64,000 bases of DNA from Sminthopsis crassicaudata (lineage: Eukaryota): assembly GCF_048593235.1 (NCBI RefSeq), contig NC_133621.1, positions 204,435,238 through 204,499,237 on the forward strand, written 5' to 3'. This document shows positions 743 to 53,314 of this stretch, piece after piece. The stretch's first letter is position 1; each line of letters opens with the position of its first letter. Under the pieces are notes generated by a model. It worked only from the letters and a program-made list of their open reading frames with translations, was not told the DNA's origin and made no database searches. The position numbers were made by a program, and so were the translations under genes.

Positions 743-1149
743 ACTGGAAAGCTTCAGTACCTATGTATTAAACTTGAAAGATCTGGGACCAGGGACTATC
801 ATAGAAATTTTCAGATTTGGATGATGCAGCTCCATAAAGAAATAAACAAGCTGGTTTTGTTCAGTGGATTCTGGACACAATATTTAATTAATTTGGTGTT
901 ATTAAGTTCTTGAATTCCCTTCCCCCAGCCGTAAAGTCTTACTCCTTGAAATTTGGTTTCTAGGTGATTCATTTAATGTTTTTAAACTGAGGAGTTTTAT
1001 TTTAAGTTATATTAACAGTCAAAGGAAAAATGTTAAAAGAACAAGATATGATGCATTAAAAAACAACAACAACAACAACAAAAAAAAAACTATTATCCCC
1101 ATTCTTAGCTCTCCTCTTCTATGCAGGTTCTAAAGAAGATCAGACTTAC

Positions 1150-1258
1150 AGTCAACTAGACTGATTCCATTGTAGCTCTCCATGTCATTATCTTTCAGAA
1201 CTTCAGCAAAGTCACTACCATCAAGAGGAAAAGAACCCAGAAGGAGAACCTTCCTCAT
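1150..1258 (-). pseudogene. LYZ: Lysozyme C paralog P0, exon 1 only (rest lies left of the window); damaged signal peptide, probable pseudogene
   Basis: Reverse complement reads ATG AGG AAG GTT CTC CTT CTG ... GAC TTT GCT GAA GTT CTG AAA GAT AAT GAC ATG GAG AGC TAC AAT GGA ATC AGT CTA GTT GAC T|GTAAGT, giving MRKVLLLGSFPLDGSDFAEVLKDNDMESYNGISLVD. It aligns to exon 1 of copy A with 27 nt missing. The upstream ~350 bp and intron 1 are homologous to the other copies. Confidence 0.85.
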
Positions 1259-1311
1259 GTCCAAATAACCAATCAAACTGCTCCAAGTGCTAAACCTGAG
1301 CTGGACTTCGA

Positions 1312-1340
1312 TATGTAACTTCTCTCTCAAGTTCCTCTTC
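1312..1340 (-). promoter_or_regulatory. P0 proximal promoter: ETS/PU.1-like GAAGAGGAACT conserved; TATA-like box mutated to TTACATA
   Basis: agttcctcttc at 1330-1340 is identical to 9311-9321 of copy A. tatgtaa at 1312-1318 replaces tatttaa. Confidence 0.6.
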
Positions 1341-1584
1341 TTATTTGTCTGAAGGCCCCATTTTCCTAGTTATGTAGAAATGAAGATCTATTTATAATGA
1401 CATTTTCTCTCTTTCCTTGAAGGTAGAAGACTTGGCGCATGGAAGGGCATGGAGGTTTCCCTCTTTTCCTGAAGGCAGAATGAGAGTGGGAGGAACAGTT
1501 TCTGCTTTCTGAGTGTTTGAGCAATTAATGAATCTGATTTATTAGCAAACAAAAGTGTGGTAGAGGGATGGCCCAGATAAGCCA

Positions 1585-4531: not shown

Positions 4532-4598
4532 TTACAGATGGCAACCTTTCAGGTATCCTGAAAGGTCTTTTCCTTGGCATTTGTTTTTCCAGGCCACC
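4532..4598 (-). CDS. LYZ: LYZ copy A exon 4 ([21 protein letters not shown])
   Basis: Acceptor tttctctacag|G GTG GCC TGG; stop TAA at 4532-4534. Confidence 0.97.
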
Positions 4599-7500
4599 CT
4601 GTAGAGAAAGGGAAATGAAACAATGAAAAACTGAGCAAAATTAGCCTTGGATAAATGTTCATTTTTAACATGGAGTTATAAAGTGATATTTATGAAATAC
4701 AATTACTATTTCAAAGAGAAAAGAAAAAACATAAAAAGAAAATGTCTCATTAGGCCTTAGTTTTCTCATTTTTTTTAAAAAAAAATCAGGCTATTGGATT
4801 TTAAAGATTTCTATTAGGTTTGAACCTTTGTGATTCTTAATGTTGAGGCAACCAATAAATGAATCCACTATTCAATGATCTGACCAAATTAGACTCTTTA
4901 ATATCTCCTTTTCTTGTTCCAATGTTTTCTATCTCTCGGCTTTTGGAAGCTAAGATTAATTTCTCACCTTTGCATGGCAATTTTCAATATATAAAATCCC
5001 CCTTCTTCAAGGCTCATCCCATAATACCTCCTTCCTGAAACTTCTCAAGATGCACCAAGTAAAAGTGATCCTTTCAAATTTCAACTATTTTTAAAATCTG
5101 CATGTCTCCTTTACATCTCACACATTTTGCTCTGTTTCATAACCCTTTGAATACTTGTCTTTTTTTTCCTATTTGGTTATAAGCTTCTTTGGAGATAGAG
5201 TTTATTTTAAGCATCTAATATAATGTTTTTTGTTACTGAACAAAATTTTGCAAACTAATTTGACTGAATACATTGCCCAATGCTGAAGAAATCAATTCAA
5301 AACATATTAATAATATCTGAAGGAGCATTCTTCCACCCTACCCAACCTAATTCCTTATTATTATTATTATATAATTATATTTTATTTATTATTATATAAT
5401 ATTATACATATATAAATATTATTATAGTATTTATACCATGCTTTCAATCTAGGATTTCTGACTTCTCACTCCCTCTCATTCCCCCCAAATAATCAGTTGC
5501 CAAGGCATCCCTTTTCTACCCCTGTAATATTTTTTGTGTATAGGGGAGAAAGGGATCTTCTCTAATCTGACTCTTCCAACAGCTGGTTGCAGGTTCTCAT
5601 CACTACACACCTGGATTATAACAATATGATCTCCCCATTCCAGTCTCTCCTCCATTCAATTGTCAAAAAGTTCTTCCTAAAACATAAATCTCACCATGTC
5701 ACCTCCTATTCAATTAACAGCTCCAGTGGTTCCAAATTACCCCCAGGATTACTCTGTTGGCATTCAAAGCCAAATCCATTTTGCCAGTTCTCTTATACTT
5801 TACACTCTTTGCTGTACTCTATGTCCAGTGGCACTAGTTTCCTAACTGTGCCTTGAATCAGACATTCCATCTCTCAATTGAACACATTTTCTCTGACTCT
5901 CTCCCTTGCCAGAACTCTCTCCCTCCTCTTTTCTGCCTCTCGGGTTCTCTCACTTCTTCAAATCTCAGCTAAAGCTCTACCTTCTGAATAAATCAAGATA
6001 AACTGCATCTAAGCTCTAGATTGCATGAATCTAAGTTTTATTGTATGGGACTATTAACATGAGTCCCATAATGACTTATTGCCTATCAAATAACATTCAA
6101 ATTCTACTTGGTTTTCTAATCCCTCCCACCTGGTACCTCCCAATTCTTTCAGCCTCATTTCATCACATTTAAGTGGTTCACTTCTATTCCTTTCTGTTCC
6201 CAGGATGCAATCTGTTGCTGTTCTCATCACATTCTACTCACACGGTTGCTGATGCATAGAATAGTTCATTTCCAATCATTTGATCTTATCCCTGAAGAAT
6301 CCAATTTAACCACCATTTCTTTCAGTGAACTCCAGAATCAACAATGATTTCTCCCCTTTGTACTTGGTTTGCATCTCACTTATGGACTTTGGGATCATTC
6401 TGAATTATAACTATCTGGATTTATGGCAAATCCATCTGCTAAATCCTAGGCTGCATGAGGTCAGGGACTGTGTCTTATTGAATATTTTTTCTCTCAACAC
6501 CTAGTGCAGTGCTCTATACACAGTAAATAGGTAATAGGTAGTCTTTTAAAAAGCTTGAAGATCTATAGAGTCATGTTGCAAACTGTTTTGATTAAAATTT
6601 TAAATTGTGCTCCTGCCTGTTATTTCATCTCTAAGTTATTGGGGTTTTTTGGGGGGCCGTGGGGACATGATTCCTGGCCACAAAAACAGATTGGCAGAAA
6701 AAAGCAGCACCACAAAAACCCTAGGATCCTTATTAGGAGAGGTTGACTCATAGAATATTGTTTAAAATAATTGCTAATAGAAATAAATCCAACTAGTTTA
6801 GTTGCTGCTAAGCAATACACAACAAAATGGACTTTATCTTTGAATAACCTCAGGTCATCCCTGAAAGAAATGAATTATTCTTTATAGTGATTGAAAACAT
6901 ACCATGCACTAATGCCTTGTTGATCTACAATCTTTTTTGCACAATTTACTGTTTTCACGAGGTTATCTTCCTCCAGTTCTGAAACAGAAATGAAAGCAGA
7001 CATAAGTAAGTTTCAAGTTCATTTTATCTAAAAGGACCAATCCTCCTAGTTAAGGAAGAAGAAACAATATTATAAGATTATTTTCCTAAATTCCAGATAA
7101 ATGAGACTGCAGTCAAGAAAGGAAAGGCCTGTGCTCTCATTCATCTCCTCCAGACCTGACTTGAATTTCTGTATCACTTTAAGGCTTACAAAATACTTTT
7201 CTCTCTATAACCCTGTAAAGCAGCCAATTTTCAGATGAGAAAATTGGGACTCAGAGAGGAGATGTGACTTGTCCATGGTAACACAAATAGTCAGTGTTAA
7301 TGTCAGAACTTAAAGTCAGATGTCTTGACTCCAGGCTCAGGGTGCAGGGACCATGACCGCAGGTTGAGGGTCATCCATTTAAAAAATCAGGAATAAAGTC
7401 AAACATGAATGGACATTCTGTTTCATTTTTTTTTTTCCTTTCAAATAAATAAGGGCTGTGAAGTTGTTGTGGTGGTGGGTGACTCATTCTTAACACAAGC

Positions 7501-9240
7501 TAAGAACAGATGAAGACTAGGGAGCTGAGTTGAAGTGACTTCTGCAGGAGCACTCAGCTGTCAGGTAGTGAGTGATAAAGACTGACCATACAGAACAGCA
7601 GCTTAGAAAAAACACATTTTGGCTCACTGGTCACAGAAATCAGTCAGGGATAGAAGTAGCACCGTTACATGCCCCACGTATTAATTCTGGAGCTGAAAGA
7701 CCAGGTTCAAATCTCACCTTGGACTCTCCCTCTCCCTGTATGACCTTGGACACTCTCACTTCCCCAGACCTCACTTTAACCACTTGGGAAGTGAGAGTGA
7801 TGGATTAGAGACGGCATCAAGAGATCTCTACATCTATGATCCTATAATGTGGACTAAAAGGATCAGTCTGAATCACTGAGAATTTCCATTACAGACATTC
7901 CCCAGCCAAAGGGGGAAGCTAATTTAGGTAGCTACCTAAAATGAAAGGAGAATTTGAAGAATTGGGTCCCTTCCTTCTGAATGATCTTGTACCAGTCAAC
8001 AACAGGACTAAGAAATGATACTCTTCTGAGAAGAGATGGCCTTTTTTTAGTTTGGGAATGATGAGAGAGGAACTGGGAAGGTTAATTAGAAATTGAGTTT
8101 CTTTTTGGCTTTCTAAAGCAGCTTCCCTGTGTAAGTGTTTAATCTGCATATTATGGACCTTGCTGAGCAGAGTTGCTGTGCCCCAGATCCCAGAGGTGGC
8201 TCTTACCTGAGCACTTGTAGCCACACCCATTGGTTGCATGTGGGGTCTTGCCATCATCACACCAGTAGTGACTGTTGATCTGCATTATCCCATAATCAGT
8301 GCTTTTATCTCCAGGGTTGTAGTTTCTTGCTTTGGTATTAAAACTGCTCTCCCACCTTGCCAAGCACACCCCTGTGAAGAATTCATTTAAAGAGGGATTA
8401 TTTCATATATTATCATATTTATCCAGGAAAACCAATACTCTTGAATTGATTAATCATCCTTCATTACTGATAGTCTATAGATGGTGCTTTGAATAAATTA
8501 CAGGTTCCAGAATCAAGAAGACCTGAGTTTAAATTCAGCCCTCAGAGACTATGTGTGTGACCCTGAGCAAATTGCTTAATCCTATCAGCCTCAGTTCCTT
8601 ACCGGTTTAAAAAAAAAAAAAAATTACCTGTAAAAGGAAATGGCAAAGCACTCCAGTGTCTTTGCCAAAACAAAACAAAACAGAACAAAACAAAACAAAA
8701 CAACAAATTGAGTAGCTTAGAGTTGGACACAGCTGAAATAACTCAACAACAGCAAAGCATTATTTTCTGGGTTTTTTTAATCGAGGAAATTGGGGTTAAG
8801 TGACTTGCTTATTATATATCTAGTAAAGTGCCTGAAGTCAAATTTGAACTCAGATCCTCCTAAACTCTGGGGCCAGTGTTCTATCCACTGCTTCATTCAG
8901 CTGCCCCAACAAAGCATTACTTTTGCCAGTGTGAGCTGATGGTTAAGTTTTCACTGAGCTTTTTAACTTTTGCAAATAGGCAAACATCCAAAGGAAGAAA
9001 TTGAAAATGAAAGAAAACAAATATTCATTCCTCTGAAACTGTCACCCCCATTTTTAGCCCTCCTCTCCTTAGGGTCTGTGGAGATCACAGGAGATCAAAC
9101 TTACAGTTAGCCAGGCTGATTTGATGGTAGTTAGCCAAACCCAGATTCTTTATTCTTCTGGCAAAATCACATCTCTCCAAGATCTCACCATGGACTACCA
9201 TGGGGAGGAAGATGAATCCCAGAAGAAGGAGTACCTTCAT
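4532..9240 (-). CDS. LYZ: Lysozyme C (c-type muramidase), copy A, intact: complement(join(4532..4598,6903..6978,8207..8371,9105..9240)), 147 aa
   Basis: Exons of 136+165+76+67 = 444 nt with all introns GT-AG. Protein: [147 protein letters not shown]. It has an 18-aa signal peptide, 8 Cys, catalytic Glu (WES) and Asp (TDYG), and the canonical 4-exon LYZ structure. Confidence 0.98.
5420..6010 (+). mobile_element. L2 LINE 3' fragment in LYZ-A intron 3
   Basis: L2-type motifs (cacctggattataac, aaatctcaccatgtcacc, aaatctcagctaaagctctaccttc). Confidence 0.6.
6903..6978 (-). CDS. LYZ: LYZ copy A exon 3 ([26 protein letters not shown])
   Basis: tttctgtttcag|AACTGG...GCATG|gtatgt; 76 nt. Confidence 0.97.
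8207..8371 (-). CDS. LYZ: LYZ copy A exon 2 (catalytic exon)
   Basis: ttcttcacag|GG GTG TGC...TGC TCA G|gtaaga; 165 nt; matches ORF 8151..8369. Confidence 0.98.
8490..8905. mobile_element. Two adjacent CORE-SINEs in LYZ-A intron 1 (MIR/Mar1-like + at ~8490-8760; WSINE/Mar1-like - at ~8770-8905)
   Basis: CORE motif gacctgagtttaaattcagcc...tgtgtgaccctgagcaa, then an inverted copy (ggggttaagtgacttgc...cagctgcccc). Confidence 0.75.
9105..9240 (-). CDS. LYZ: LYZ copy A exon 1 (signal peptide + N-terminus)
   Basis: ATG at 9240-9238; GCT AAC T|gtaagt donor; 136 nt. Confidence 0.98.
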
Positions 9241-9292
9241 GTTGCCTGAGTAGTCAAGCTGCTCCAACTGTTGAGGCTGAATCAAGCCCCAG

Positions 9293-9321
9293 TATTTAAC
9301 TTCTCTCTTCAGTTCCTCTTC
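9293..9321 (-). promoter_or_regulatory. LYZ-A proximal promoter: TATA-like TTAAATA (9293-9299) and ETS/PU.1-like GAAGAGGAACT (9311-9321)
   Basis: Position ~55-80 nt upstream of the ATG. The purine box is perfectly conserved in P0. PU.1/ETS control of lysozyme promoters is established in other vertebrates. Confidence 0.7.
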
Positions 9322-9619
9322 CTTGCTTTTTGAGGGCTCCACATGCTGGCTATGCAAAAATCAAGATTTGTTTATTGCTACATTTCCCTATTTCCCCTGA
9401 AGGCAGAAAACCTGGCACATAGTATGGGAAGGTACCTCTCCCTCTAGTCCAAGGTTCAATTAAGGTGACAGGACAGGGACAGATTCTGCTTTCCTGGTGT
9501 AACACCAGACTTACCCAACATTAGTGGAATTGATTTACCAGTAAATCAAATTGTAACAGAGGAAGAAAGACTCAGATAACAGGCTAAAATCCACCTTCCT
9601 CAACACTAATGCCAATCAG

Positions 9620-9770
9620 TCATCCTGATCTCTATCTGGCCAGTGGACCCAGATGGCTCTGGAGGGGAAAGTACAGCAGGTGACCCTGCACAGCCTCCCT
9701 CACTTAAATCCAATTCCTTACCTCCCTGATGTCATGGTCCTCTTGGAGAACAACAGTAACGATATATAAG
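9620..9770 (+). mobile_element. Marsupial SINE 3' part (Mar3/WALLSI-like)
   Basis: ggacccagatggctctggagg...cctcacttaaatccaattc...gatgtcatggtcctctt resembles RTE-related marsupial SINE ends; family name from memory. Confidence 0.5.
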
Positions 9771-9976
9771 ACAAGAGAGTCTGAGAATCACAGAATTTCA
9801 GAGTTAGAATGGAATCCAACTCTTTCCCATCCTATGTTCAAGTGGAATCTTCTCTGCAACCTACATGATGAATAGTCAAATAATTTTTCCTGGAATCCAA
9901 ATCTATTTTTAACAACTTTGAAACTTTTATTTACTTCATCTGAGAAAAATTGCACATTCATAAATTACAATCCTTA

Positions 9977-10519
9977 TGTAATATCAGTTATTAGTATTAC
10001 CTGTTTATGGGCCAGAACTCTGAACTTGAAACAAAGGATTCTTACAAGGTACTAAGTCAGTGGAATTGATAGAAACAATATTTATCTAATTTACATGGTT
10101 CAGTATGATTGATCTGATCCTACATCTCCTTATAGGGCCAGAACTTGAAACAAGGCACTAAGTGGAATTGAGGAGACAATGGTTAAATCTATTTTCCATT
10201 GATTTAATCTTACAACAAATAGTGGTTTCCTAGTGATACAATGATTGCTGTATACTCAGTGTGTAGGATATAAGTTAGAAGCCTCAGCCAGGGAGATTCA
10301 GAAGCCAGAGAAGGCAGGCGGGAGCTCAAGCTTTCGGAAACAAGGAGAGAGGAAGGCCTCCAGAAAAACTAGCTGAGCCCCCAGTGAAGAAGACAATAAA
10401 GGATTTGGACCTTAACCCCTGGCTACTCTGGTGGTGATTGATCAACTGAAACAAAGGCTGCTCCAGAGACCCCAAGAAAACCTCAACAGAGAACATTACA
10501 TTTTAGAGAGAACATTACA
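9977..10519 (+). mobile_element. Solo LTR ~0.7 kb upstream of LYZ-A
   Basis: TGTAA...TTACA termini, internal gatataa and AATAAA (gacaataaagg), internal short duplications. Flanks ctta/atta are an imperfect 4-bp TSD. Confidence 0.7.
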
Positions 10520-48830: not shown

Positions 48831-50171
48831 AAGTATCAAAAGAGAAAAGGGACTGTGTACTTAGGTTAATTCAGAGATCCATTGCTCCCAAGCCCAACAG
48901 CTTTGGGGCAGACTGTTGGGAAAGGAATCAGGAAACCAAGTCCACACTTTTCCCCTTTACCTCTTTTCCTGACAGGGACCCATCTGAATTGTCTTTACCC
49001 ATTATGAAAGTTCTCAATAAGAGCTGGCCCCACTTTGAAGCCATCACTGATGTCCAGTGACCTGTTGCTACCTTGACCTATTTGTAATTTCTTTGTCCTT
49101 AGTTTTGCTTCCTTAATCAGGGTAAGTGAAGAATTTCTTTTCAAAAGTTCCAAAGGTGTAACAATACCTGAAGCCTTAAAGGACTGCAGAATATAAAGGC
49201 ATTCCCTCTAATTAACTAATTAGTGAAAGTGGTATCTTATCTCTTAGAAAAGAATTCTAGGTTTTTAAACAGGAGCCAGAAATTCTGGCCATAAACTGGC
49301 CAGAAATTCTGGCCAAAACATAAAAGTTGAACACTCCCTCAGAATTAGAAAGTTTTCCTAATAATGAATAGCCCTGAATTCCTGATATAAATCCCCCTGC
49401 ATGATCTTTATGATATATTGCTATAATCTCTTTGCTGACATGAGCAACAAAGTGAAAATAATCAGTCAGGACACAGAATGTCTTGTTCATGGAAGAACAA
49501 GGGTGTAGAAGAATATGGAGGGCTGGGAGGAGTAATGTATAAGGTAGAGGAAAATTGGAAAGCTAGTAGAAGAGCTTTGAAAGCGAAACAGAAAATTTAT
49601 ATTAATAACAACAGAAAAACAAGGACTACCATCTAAATAATGCTTTAAATTTAAACAGGACACCCTTTTAAGGTTAATATGCCCTATTAACATGATCTCC
49701 ATTAATTCTTAAGTCTAGGCAAAGAACAAAATGGTAGGTTAAGCATTGATTTGTAGCATTTCCCAATATCCAAAGTGTCAAAGCTTATACTGAAAATTTA
49801 ACCATCAGCATACTCCATCAAAGTAATACTTCACTGAGTTAAGTCATTTAAATTGTGTCCAACTCTCAGTTACCTTCATTGGGAATTTAATGACAAAGAG
49901 AGTGAAGTGATTTGTTATTTCCTTTTCCTTTTCTAGCTCTTTTATATATATATATATATATAGAACTGAATTAATTGACTTGCTCACACAGCAAGTGTTT
50001 AAGGCTGGATTTATACTCAGGTCCTCTTTATTTTGGTGTCAGGGATCTAACCAATGTACCACATACACTATATCAGTTATGAAGGAGGAATAATCAATTC
50101 AAGAGTATTGGTTTTCCTGGGTAAATATGATAATATATGAAATAATCTTTCTTTAAATGAATTCTTCACAG

Positions 50172-50336
50172 GGGTGTGCTTGGCAAGGTGGGAGAGCAGT
50201 TTTAATACCAAAGCAAGAAACTACAACCCTGCAGATAAAAGCACTGATTATGGGATAATGCAGATCAACAGTCACTACTGGTGTGATGATGGCAAGACCC
50301 CACATGCAACCAATGGGTGTGGCTACAAGTGCTCAG
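50172..50336 (+). pseudogene. LYZ: LYZ-C exon 2 (catalytic Glu/Asp intact)
   Basis: ttcttcacag|GG GTG TGC...TCA G|gtaaga; matches ORF 50174..50392. Confidence 0.95.
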
Positions 50337-51061
50337 GTAAGAGCCACCTCTGGGATCTGGGGCACAGCAACTCTGCTCAGCAAGGTCCATAATATGCAGA
50401 TTAAACACTTACACAGGGAAGCTGCTTTAGAAAGCCAAAAAGAAACTCAATTTCTAATTAACCTTCCCAGTTCCTCTCTCATCATTCCCAAACTAAAAAA
50501 AGGCCATCTCTTCTCAGAAGAGTATCATTTCTTAGTCCTGTTGTTGACTGGTACAAGATCATTCAGAAGGAAGGGACCCAATTCTTCAAATTCTCCTTTC
50601 ATTTTAGGTAGCTACCTAAATTAGCTTCCCCTTTTGGCTGGGAAATGTCTGTAATGGGAATTCTCAGTGATTCAGACTGATCCTTTTAGTCCACATTATA
50701 GGATCATAGATGTAGAGATCTCTTGATGCCGTCTAATCCATCACTCTCACTTCCCAAGTGGTTAAAGTGAGGTCTGGGGAAGTGAGAGTGTCCAAGGTCA
50801 TACAGGGAGAGGGAGAGTCCAAGGTGAGAATTGAACCTGGTCTTTCAGCTCCAGAATTAATACGTGGGGCATGTAACGGTGCTACTTCTAGCCCTGACTG
50901 ATTTCTGTGACCAGTGAGCCAAAATGTGTTTTTTCCAAGCTGCTGTTCTGTATGGTCAACCTTTATCACTCACTACCTGACAGCTGAGTGCTCCTGCAGA
51001 AGTCACTTCAACTGAGCTCCCTAGTCTTCATCTGTTCTTAGCTTGTGTTAAGAATGAGTCA

Positions 51062-51566
51062 CCCATTTACATGAACTGATGCTGAGTGAAATGAGCAGGA
51101 CCAGGAGATCATTTTATACCTCAATAATGATACTGTATAAGGATGTATTCTGATGGGCGTGGCCCTCTTTAACAATGAGATGAACCAAATCAGTTCCACT
51201 AGAGCAGTAATGAACTGAACCAGCTACACCCAGTGAAAGAACTCTGAGAGATGACTATGAACCACTACAAAGAATTCCCAATCCCTCTATTTTTATCCGC
51301 CTGCATTTTTGATTTCCTTCACAGGTTAATTGTACACTATTTCAAAGTCCGATGCTTTTTGTACGCAAAATAACTGTATGGACATGTATACATATATTGT
51401 ATGTAATTTATATTTTAACATATTTAGCATGTATTGGTCAACCTGCCATTAGGGGTAGGGGGTAGGGGGAAGGAGGGGAAAAATGGGAACAAAAGGTTTG
51501 GCAGTTGTCAATGCTGTAAAATTACCCATGCATAAAAAGCTATAATTTAAAAAAAAAAAAAAAAAA
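51062..51566 (+). mobile_element. L1 3' end in intron 2 of LYZ-C, absent from copy A
   Basis: 12-bp TSD aagaatgagtca; poly-A; empty site at ~7480-7490 in copy A. Confidence 0.93.
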
Positions 51567-51933
51567 AAGAATGAGTCAACCACAACCACAACAACTTCAC
51601 AGCCCTTATCTATTTGAAAGGAAAAAAAAAAATAATGAAACAGGACTTTATTCTTGATTTTTTAAATGGATGACCCTCAACCTGTGGTCATGGTCCCTGC
51701 ACCCTGAGCCTGGAGTCAAGACATCTGACTTTAAGTTCTGACATTAACACTGACTATTTGTGTTACCATGGACAAGTCACATCTCCTCTCTGAGTCCCAA
51801 TTTTCTCATCTGAAAATTGGCTGCTTTACAGGGTTATAGAGAGAAAAGTACTTTGTAAGCCTTAAAGTGATACAGACATTCAAGTCAGTTAGGTCTGGGA
51901 GGAGATGAATGAGAGCACAGGCCTTTCCTTTCT

Positions 51934-52095
51934 CTCTCTCTCTCTCTCTCTTTTTTTTTTTTTGAGGCTGGGGGTAAGTGACTTGCCCAGGGTCACACAG
52001 CCAGGACGTGTTAAGTGTCTGACATCAGATTTGAACTCTGGTCCTCTGGAATTCAGGGCTGGTGCTCTACACACTGCCCCACCTAGCTGCCCTTG
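51934..52095 (-). mobile_element. WSINE1-like SINE in intron 2 of LYZ-C, absent from copy A
   Basis: 14-bp TSD ggcctttcctttct. Confidence 0.92.
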
Positions 52096-52241
52096 GGCCT
52101 TTCCTTTCTTGACTGCAGTCTCATTTATCTGGAATTTAGAAAAATAATCTTATAATATTGTTCTTCTTCTTTAACTAGGAGGATTGGTTCTTTTACATAA
52201 AATGAACTTGAAACTTATGTCTGCTTTCATTTCTCTTTCAG

Positions 52242-52320
52242 AACTGGAGGAAGATAACCTCGTGAAAGCAGTAAATTGTGCAAAAAAGGTCGTAGATCAA
52301 CAAGGCATTATTAGAGCATG
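52242..52320 (+). pseudogene. LYZ: LYZ-C exon 3
   Basis: ttctctttcag|AACTGG...AGAGCATG|gtatgt. Confidence 0.95.
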
Positions 52321-52355
52321 GTATGTTTTCAATCACTATAAAGAATAAATCATTT

Positions 52356-52498
52356 GGGGCAGCTAAGTGGTGCAGTGGATAGAGCACCAGCCCTGAAGTC
52401 AGGAGGACCTGAGTTCAAATCTGATGTCAGACACTTAACACTTTCCAGCTGTGTGACTCTGGGCAAGTCACTAATCCCAATTGCCTCAGGGGAAAAAA
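52356..52498 (+). mobile_element. WSINE1-like SINE 35 nt after LYZ-C exon 3
   Basis: ggggcagctaagtggtgcagtgg...cctcaggggaaaaaa. Confidence 0.9.
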
Positions 52499-52722
52499 TT
52501 CAAGAATGAGCATGTTCAATGAATGAGATAAGGTGTTCAAAGATAAAATAAAGTCCATTTTGCTGTGTATTGTATTGCAGTAACTAGGCTGGTAGGAGAT
52601 ATTCCTAAAATTCAAGAATGAGCATGTTCAATGAATGAGATAAGGTGTTCAAAGATAAAATAAAGTCCATTTTGCTGTGTATTGTATTGCAGTAACTAAC
52701 TAGGCTGGTAGGAGATATTCCT
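52495..52722 (+). repeat. Direct tandem duplication of 112/116 bp
   Basis: aaaattcaagaatgag...gagatattcct occurs at 52495-52606 and 52607-52722, identical apart from a 4-nt insertion. Confidence 0.95.
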
Positions 52723-53314
52723 ATTAGCAATCATTTTAAACAATATTCTATGGGACAACCTTTCCTAATAAGGATTGTTGTTATGGTGCTGCTTTCCTTA
52801 TTGTACAGAAGGACAGTATATCAATGCAGTAATTATCCAGTAGGGAAATACAATATTGGAATTGTCCATTACAAAGCAATCAAGTAATCTTATAAGTCCT
52901 TTTTCTGACTCTACTGGAAATGGCCCTTTCCTAGGGGCCTGCAATGTCCATTCTGGCCATCAGGAGGTGCTCAGCTAAAAGATTCTGAGGCTTCTCTGCC
53001 CACCCTTGGACTGTGTTCTCAGCACAAAGCATGGCATTAAGCCCAAGCTGTCACAGTTCAAACTATGGTCTGATATGAAACATTGCTCAAAATATTAAAA
53101 TATGAGGTCTGTGGCCTCTACTACTTCATGGGTCCCTATACCTTTGGGGTTTTGTTCTTCCAATTTATTGCCCACTACCCTCATTGATCAAATGATTATG
53201 GAGTTTATTTCTCACATTTCATAAATAAATAAAATTAAAAATTTTCATAAATAAAAAATTCATAAATCACATTTCATAAGCATTCATGTATATAAAAAAT
53301 GAACATTTATTTAA

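Follow-up and report, generated by a model that had tools for sequence, protein, structure and literature searches.

Lysozyme c genes are an established case of concerted evolution: in ruminants and rodents conversion has involved only parts of the genes, which have become mosaics (Irwin & Wilson 1990, pmid 2318875; Wen & Irwin 1999, pmid 10620405; reviewed in PMC3141428). Multiple Lyz genes are also present in opossum and wallaby, and concerted evolution has been suspected in marsupials (PMC3141428). The sequence analyzed here, called the window in the following, is a stretch of 64,000 nucleotides from Sminthopsis crassicaudata (NCBI RefSeq assembly GCF_048593235.1, contig NC_133621.1, positions 204,435,238 to 204,499,237, forward strand) and, judging from its letters, is a C-type lysozyme cluster, composed of an intact gene (A), a broken copy (B), a truncated copy (C) and a fragment (P0). 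A, on the minus strand, and C, on the plus strand, are arranged head to head; two islands, a non-coding upstream block and a tract from exon 2 to exon 3, are nearly identical between them, within arms that are otherwise widely diverged. The locus is an ordinary instance of a duplicated gene family evolving in concert, as is already known for lysozyme genes, and its mosaic was very probably generated by repeated ectopic gene conversion between the old inverted paralogs A and C, in tracts bounded by heterologies.

With the ruminant and rodent genes the locus shares both the family and a mosaic produced by conversion of gene parts only. It differs from them in that the partners are inverted and one of them is truncated, that the strongest homogenisation affects non-coding sequence, in a block situated about 10 kb upstream, and that intron 2 appears to be converted along with the exons. 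A preliminary description of the window had drawn a comparison with the ampliconic palindromes of the Y chromosome, whose arms are reportedly more than 99.9% identical throughout, owing to arm-to-arm conversion. The analogy is good for the head-to-head inverted arms around a spacer and for intrachromosomal conversion; it does not extend to the degree of homogenisation, as homogenisation is limited here to about 4 kb, out of arms of roughly 15 kb, the remainder being 64–78% identical, and the 16-kb spacer contains another paralog. Human IDS, which has an inverted partial copy with exon 2-3-like sequence, and the int22h repeats of F8 are pairs that undergo conversion and inversion by homologous recombination, the inversions being documented. 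They resemble the present locus in that an intact gene and a truncated copy, inverted relative to it, are highly identical over a few kb; here, in contrast, no inversion was observed, the contigs being unable to show the orientation of the spacer. In the human fetal globin pair HBG1/HBG2 a conversion domain is said to be bounded by heterology: sharply delimited near-identity within an older paralogy, with edges at repeats or insertions, is common to the two cases, but the globin genes are direct tandem genes, both functional.

When the window is compared with itself by BLAST, at two sensitivities, the A arm aligns with the C arm in a single inverted chain of about ten segments, in the same order over about 15 kb (Table 1). 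The three nested inverted matches previously noticed are found again at their places, with midpoints between 29.27 and 29.61 kb. Apart from copies of a short interspersed element (SINE), the same search found no inverted match between the arms outside the chain, so that its order and orientation are not due to chance matches of dispersed repeats. Most segments are 64–78% identical, which indicates an old duplication; the background between the arms ranges from 64 to 81%, corresponding to Jukes-Cantor (JC) distances of 0.26–0.48. Identity above 95% occurs only in the two islands, all the rest of the arms being either at background level or unmatched, and is therefore far from uniform along the arms (about 95–99% in the islands). 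The distance between block and exon 2 is similar on the two sides (10,716 bp in A, 10,204 bp in C) and is filled by different insertions, as already remarked; the likeness is nevertheless a coincidence, because the A arm contains a 5.9-kb insertion resembling an endogenous retrovirus (ERV) and the C arm a 3.9-kb tandem duplication. Part of C intron 1 (49174-49809) is similar to B, at about 75–85% by windows in a three-way alignment and 74–79% by BLAST, and has no detectable homolog in A: deletion of this part from A and a closer kinship of B and C account for the finding equally well. One short patch of the chain, at 10843-10974, about 1.6 kb upstream of the A start codon, exceeds the background and has as neighbors 68% homology and a C-only insertion of about 700 bp; it could represent a third tract of conversion or else a conserved element.

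The upstream block is the most strongly homogenised part of the arms. Its two copies differ by several indels and by 23 substitutions in 2450 aligned columns (0.94%, JC distance 0.0094), are 98.6% identical when gaps are counted, and share a difference-free run of up to 509 bp. The distal edge is exact: past 21550/37509 A and C are unrelated, while homology between B and C continues for about 70 bp, indicating that it is the homology of A that ends there and that C lies in the ancestral context. The proximal edge (19087/39968) adjoins an indel, of 118 bp in A and 453 bp, including a SINE, in C, beyond which homology of about 70% resumes. As copy B retains a version of the distal part of the block, 72–82% identical and in plus orientation, the block belonged to the ancestral unit. 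None of its eight open reading frames (ORFs) has a match in Pfam, a regulatory role being still possible; no Rfam family is matched anywhere in the window, and neither a target-site duplication nor terminal repeats are seen at the block ends. The GC content of the block, well above the 35–40% of its flanks, fits GC-biased conversion, without demonstrating it; the B homolog has 44% GC against 52.5% in A and C, over about 200 bp only, a stretch too short to conclude on such a bias.

In the exon 2-3 island, once three C-only insertions are set aside, A and C are identical at 1522 of 1562 positions (97.4%). This agrees with the value of about 97% first given for the whole match, which is however not uniform: substitutions are 13 out of 973 in sub-tract 2a (1.35%, JC distance 0.0135), 17 out of 331 in 2b (5.1%) and 10 out of 258 in 2c (3.9%). 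Sub-tract 2a differs significantly from 2b and 2c taken together (P = 2e-4) and is statistically equal to the upstream block (P = 0.35): divergences of 0.9–1.4% and of 4–5% thus indicate at least two age classes among the islands. The 5' edge (8453/50090) is sharp, although it falls within continuous homology, with mismatches changing from 31 out of 109 to 3 out of 79 (P = 6e-6); here, as at the block edges, the abrupt jumps of identity previously reported are borne out. The 5' part of intron 2 is as similar (720 out of 729 positions, 98.8%) as exon 2 (164 out of 165), and selection on the exons is therefore very unlikely to be the cause of the likeness.

At the exon 3 edge, the only one where A, B and C all align, the relationship of the three copies was evaluated directly. 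Inside the island (7122-6868) the informative sites group A with C in 53 cases, A with B in 7 and B with C in 2; past the SINE that marks the edge (6867-6700) the corresponding counts are 18, 22 and 10 (Fisher P = 6e-8). A and C are therefore grouped together inside the island only and, just outside, the distances among the three copies are about the same: intron 3 of C does not follow exons 2 and 3 in grouping with A, nor is it clearly "B-like", as it had been called. The two SINEs that delimit sub-tracts 2b and 2c in C are absent from both A and B; their divergence from the window consensus (9–12%) makes them look older than the tracts, which suggests that the SINEs were already in place when the tracts formed around them, rather than interrupting the tracts later. 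Right after the island-ending SINE, in C intron 3, a 112-bp unit is directly duplicated (52495-52723, 96.6% identity).

The reality of the block was checked on Logan contigs from four DNA runs, belonging to two samples of different studies, over positions 18000-22500. The assembly was probably derived from one of these samples, whose flanks it matches exactly; the other shows a difference of about 1%. In one run the k-mer depth of the block is 83.6–89.9 against 50–57 in the flanks and, in another run of the same sample, 36.6 against 18.5–21; the ratio in this sample (S1), about 1.5–1.9, corresponds to approximately two copies, when paralog-specific k-mers are allowed for. Over 19376-19532 both paralog versions are found as separate contigs, with depths of 53.5 and 40.9, and the six positions that distinguish these are precisely those that distinguish the arms; in a second run a contig covering 19503-20996 features the letters and indels of the C arm. 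The two-copy unitig stops exactly at 21550, where a single-copy unitig continues; 19087 is bridged by a unitig in both samples. The reads therefore show that two copies of the block truly exist and that their differences and edges are real, not the result of collapse or mis-polishing of one copy, a possibility raised at the outset. Short de Bruijn contigs cannot phase across a repeat of 2.46 kb. Some joints listed for the reads, such as 18707 to 21156, have sides of 20–21 letters only and were taken as short-repeat noise.

In the second sample (runs X5 and X6), over 19173-21529, the central contig of the block has a depth of about 147 and the distal 540 bp of about 90, against 40–66 in the flanks; the retained path has an A-type letter (19448) next to a C-type one (19449) within 31 bp, together with four new letters. 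This could reflect a difference in copy number, ongoing exchange leading to shared polymorphism, or simplification of the contigs. Near the old flank of the block, a self-complementary stretch and a short segment (17980-18148 and 18604-18754) reach k-mer depths of about 1e6 and 5e4, compared with about 55 in the surrounding sequence: they are very high-copy repeats adjoining that flank.

Taken together, the mosaic of identities, the edge within continuous homology, the switch of relationship, the homogenisation of intron 2 and the different age classes fit repeated conversion. From them we infer that A and C are old head-to-head paralogs, in which non-reciprocal homologous repair would have overwritten two islands of homology more than once. 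Tracts would stop where pairing fails, that is, at 21550, where the homology of A ends, at the indel next to 19087/39968 and at the L1 (long interspersed element 1) and SINE insertions found only in C. Converted islands, staying similar, would remain substrates for more conversion, the other parts of the arms drifting to about 65–78% identity. The preliminary description had proposed an inverted duplication of old date and its repeated, patchwise conversion; the collinear chain, its two young islands, the presence of at least two age classes, the site-pattern switch and the two-copy block all uphold this proposal.

The direction of conversion was probably from A to C. One hint is the ancestral context of C at the distal edge of the block, another comes from the tandem duplication of the C arm, whose units T1 and T2 differ by 1.15% substitutions over 3311 bp and whose left breakpoint falls within the last 125 bp of the block. 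In the 125 bp of T1 overlapping the block six sites differ from T2, and at all six A is identical to T1, which suggests that sequence from A replaced that of T1 once the duplication had taken place. The excess of mismatches in the overlap has a nominal P of 0.004; since mismatches are just as frequent in two other 100-bp windows of the duplication, the T2 relic, tried as a proof of direction, was downgraded to a suggestive indication. If A is the usual donor, the clean exons 2 and 3 of C require no selection on C itself, and conversion from A would be sufficient to keep them so.

Some points weigh against this reconstruction. The direction is weakly indicated, and the changes are not polarised by an outgroup species. 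Distally, the homology of A and C does not continue past the block and, proximally, the block adjoins an indel, so that its edges, by themselves, also fit a pasted duplicate. The read check covers only the A-arm block and its surroundings. Finally, the relative orientation of A and C depends on how the scaffold was joined over an N gap.

Other explanations of the islands may be set against these data. That they were recently pasted by duplication, for instance through replication template switching or one-ended repair copying A segments into C or the reverse, is unlikely, although it ranks above the remaining alternatives. Razor-sharp block edges and the lack of A–C homology distal to 21550/37509 are in favor of such an event, and the equal divergence of block and 2a would allow a single episode. 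Both islands, however, are in place within a collinear old chain, B has an old homolog of the block at the corresponding position, the exon 2-3 island has its 5' limit in the midst of continuous 70% homology, with no junction sequence, and 2a is significantly younger than 2b and 2c; replacement of a segment in situ is, in any case, operationally equivalent to conversion. An assembly artefact, in which the high-identity tracts of one arm would be due to collapse, mis-polishing or gap filling with sequence of the other paralog, is quite improbable. The assembly is indeed scaffolded, with N gaps, a mis-fill would give sharp edges, and the read check covers the A-arm block only; yet a depth of about two copies is found in two samples of different studies, the paralog-specific letters of both copies are present in the reads, the graph branches exactly at 21550, the block copies differ by all the substitutions and indels described above, and the C island has L1 and SINE insertions of its own, with a target-site duplication. 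A false duplication by mis-joined haplotypes was also considered and rejected, since outside the islands the arms differ by 20–35% and in transposon content.

The last two alternatives deserve hardly any credit. Purifying selection on functional exons and on a regulatory block could be invoked to keep the islands alike without exchange, as the islands include the catalytic exons 2 and 3 and the block is compositionally distinct from its flanks. Against it stand intron 2, as identical as the exons, the B copy of the block, which has diverged to 72–82%, and the fall from about 99% to about 70% identity within a few bases; moreover, C, being devoid of exons 1 and 4, is not likely to be selected as a gene. 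Just as remote is the independent insertion of a young transposable element, corresponding to the 2.46-kb block, into both arms. It would explain the sharp ends, and short internal stretches (19812-19962 and 20869-21019) do show raised k-mer depth. The overall depth, on the other hand, is that of about two copies, no coding domain was found in the block, its ends lack the marks of transposition looked for, and both copies occupy collinear positions in the arms. The transposon was rejected on copy number, on the ends and on the old homolog present in B.

Repeated conversion between A and C may have further consequences, which are more speculative. Inversion of the spacer, already contemplated in the preliminary description, is plausible from general knowledge of inverted repeats. 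A wider proposal is rather improbable as a whole: that the near-identical blocks drive recurrent, possibly polymorphic inversion of the 16-kb spacer with copy B, that the exons of C, fed by A, act as a reservoir of variants for the sole intact lysozyme gene, and that the 51% GC of the block is a footprint of GC-biased conversion. More directly, the locus provides evidence at the sequence level for the concerted evolution of marsupial lysozymes, merely suspected in PMC3141428, and a compact example of conversion tracts delimited by insertions and by the end of homology. It also shows how clean catalytic exons may persist in a copy without exons 1 and 4, probably because they are rewritten from the intact gene, rather than selected. 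For annotation, the near-identical tracts are to be treated as real duplicates, and paralog-specific variants in them should not be taken for heterozygosity.

Table 1. Coordinates of the lysozyme copies, of the homogenised islands, of the segments of the A–C chain and of inserted or duplicated sequences in the window
Feature	Position	Strand or orientation	Description
Gene A, intact lysozyme c	4532-9240	-	exon 1 9240-9105, exon 2 8371-8207, exon 3 6978-6903, coding part of exon 4 4598-4532
Copy B, broken, in spacer	26981-36994	+	block homolog 26981-27343, gap 27344-27691, frameshifted exon-1-like 27796-27967, degenerate exon 3 29688-29753, disrupted exon-4-like near 34990
Copy C, truncated	exon 2 50172-50336, exon 3 52242-52320	+	both exons open, splice sites intact
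P0, promoter and exon-1 fragment	909-1516	-	66% identical to the A counterpart
Upstream block, A arm	19087-21550	-	2464 bp, 51% GC, non-coding, about 10 kb upstream of A exon 1
Upstream block, C arm	37509-39968	+	inverted partner of 19087-21550
Exon 2-intron 2-exon 3 island, A	6868-8452	-	sub-tracts 2a 8450-7476, 2b 7475-7131, 2c 7130-6868
Exon 2-3 island, C	50091-52355	+	broken up by C-only insertions
C-only L1 3' end, 5'-truncated	51068-51584	+	poly-A, target-site duplication of about 14 bp; splits 2a from 2b; matches L1 3' end 34303-34704
C-only SINE	51920-52095	-	splits 2b from 2c; 9.2% from window SINE consensus
C-only SINE	52352-52507	+	3' edge of island; 12.2% from window SINE consensus
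Chain segment	A 6701-6840, C 52795-52657	inverted	81%
Chain segment	A 6868-8452, C 52355-50091	inverted	high identity
Chain segment	A 8453-8760 (-), C 49828-50090	inverted	67–72%; A intron 1 flank; shared old SINE-like tail
Chain segment	A 10843-10974 (-), C 48994-49125	inverted	93%, 132-bp patch
Chain segment	A 11036-11377, C 48296-47943	inverted	68%
Chain segment	A 17434-17611, C 47376-47199	inverted	78%
Chain segment	A 17792-17906, C 41361-41248	inverted	76%
Chain segment, old flank adjacent to block	A 18205-18968 (-), C 41204-40422	inverted	64.5% by BLAST; 60–82% per 100-bp window
Chain segment	A 19087-21550, C 39968-37509	inverted	98.6%
ERV-like insertion, A arm	11490-17428	+	direct repeats of about 730 bp, resembling long terminal repeats, about 85% identical; absent from C
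Direct tandem duplication, C arm	39844-47186	+	T1 39844-43736, T2 43737-47186, period 3893; 98.7% identical by substitutions

Lysozyme exons were searched one by one. Gene A encodes 147 codons, with eight cysteines, conserved Glu35 and Asp53 contexts and canonical splice sites. Its exon 2 aligns with residues 29–82 of human lysozyme (E = 5e-25), and exon 2 of A and that of C each match PF00062, the C-type lysozyme / alpha-lactalbumin family, with E of about 1e-17. The exon-by-exon search found neither exon 1 nor exon 4 of copy C. In P0 a 25-nt deletion removes the end of the signal peptide and Cys6; the remainder of this fragment is hidden by an N gap (522-742) and by the window edge. Exon 2 of copy B was not found by the exon-by-exon search; the downstream region of B matches A 7122-2111 at 67–83% identity.

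The other of the two N gaps of the window (27344-27691) is located inside the B unit, where it overlaps no matched tract and no coding frame. Pieces of the unit flank it on both sides, in plus orientation, and follow one another as expected, with the block homolog before the gap and the exon-1-like sequence after it. As this is also the order of the units of A and C, where the block precedes exon 1, the orientation of the scaffold is supported. The A block and its homolog in B are, moreover, head to head within a single contig.

The window as a whole has 38.6% GC and is strongly depleted in CpG. It contains about ten copies of a 145-bp, tRNA-type SINE, whose consensus we take to be of the marsupial type. 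The terminal repeats of the ERV-like insertion carry an AATAAA signal and its interior is degenerate; no Pfam match was found for the ORFs of this insertion or of the tandem duplication. In the downstream region of B, at 32605-34747, a LINE-1 fragment features a 594-codon open frame matching the reverse transcriptase family PF00078.

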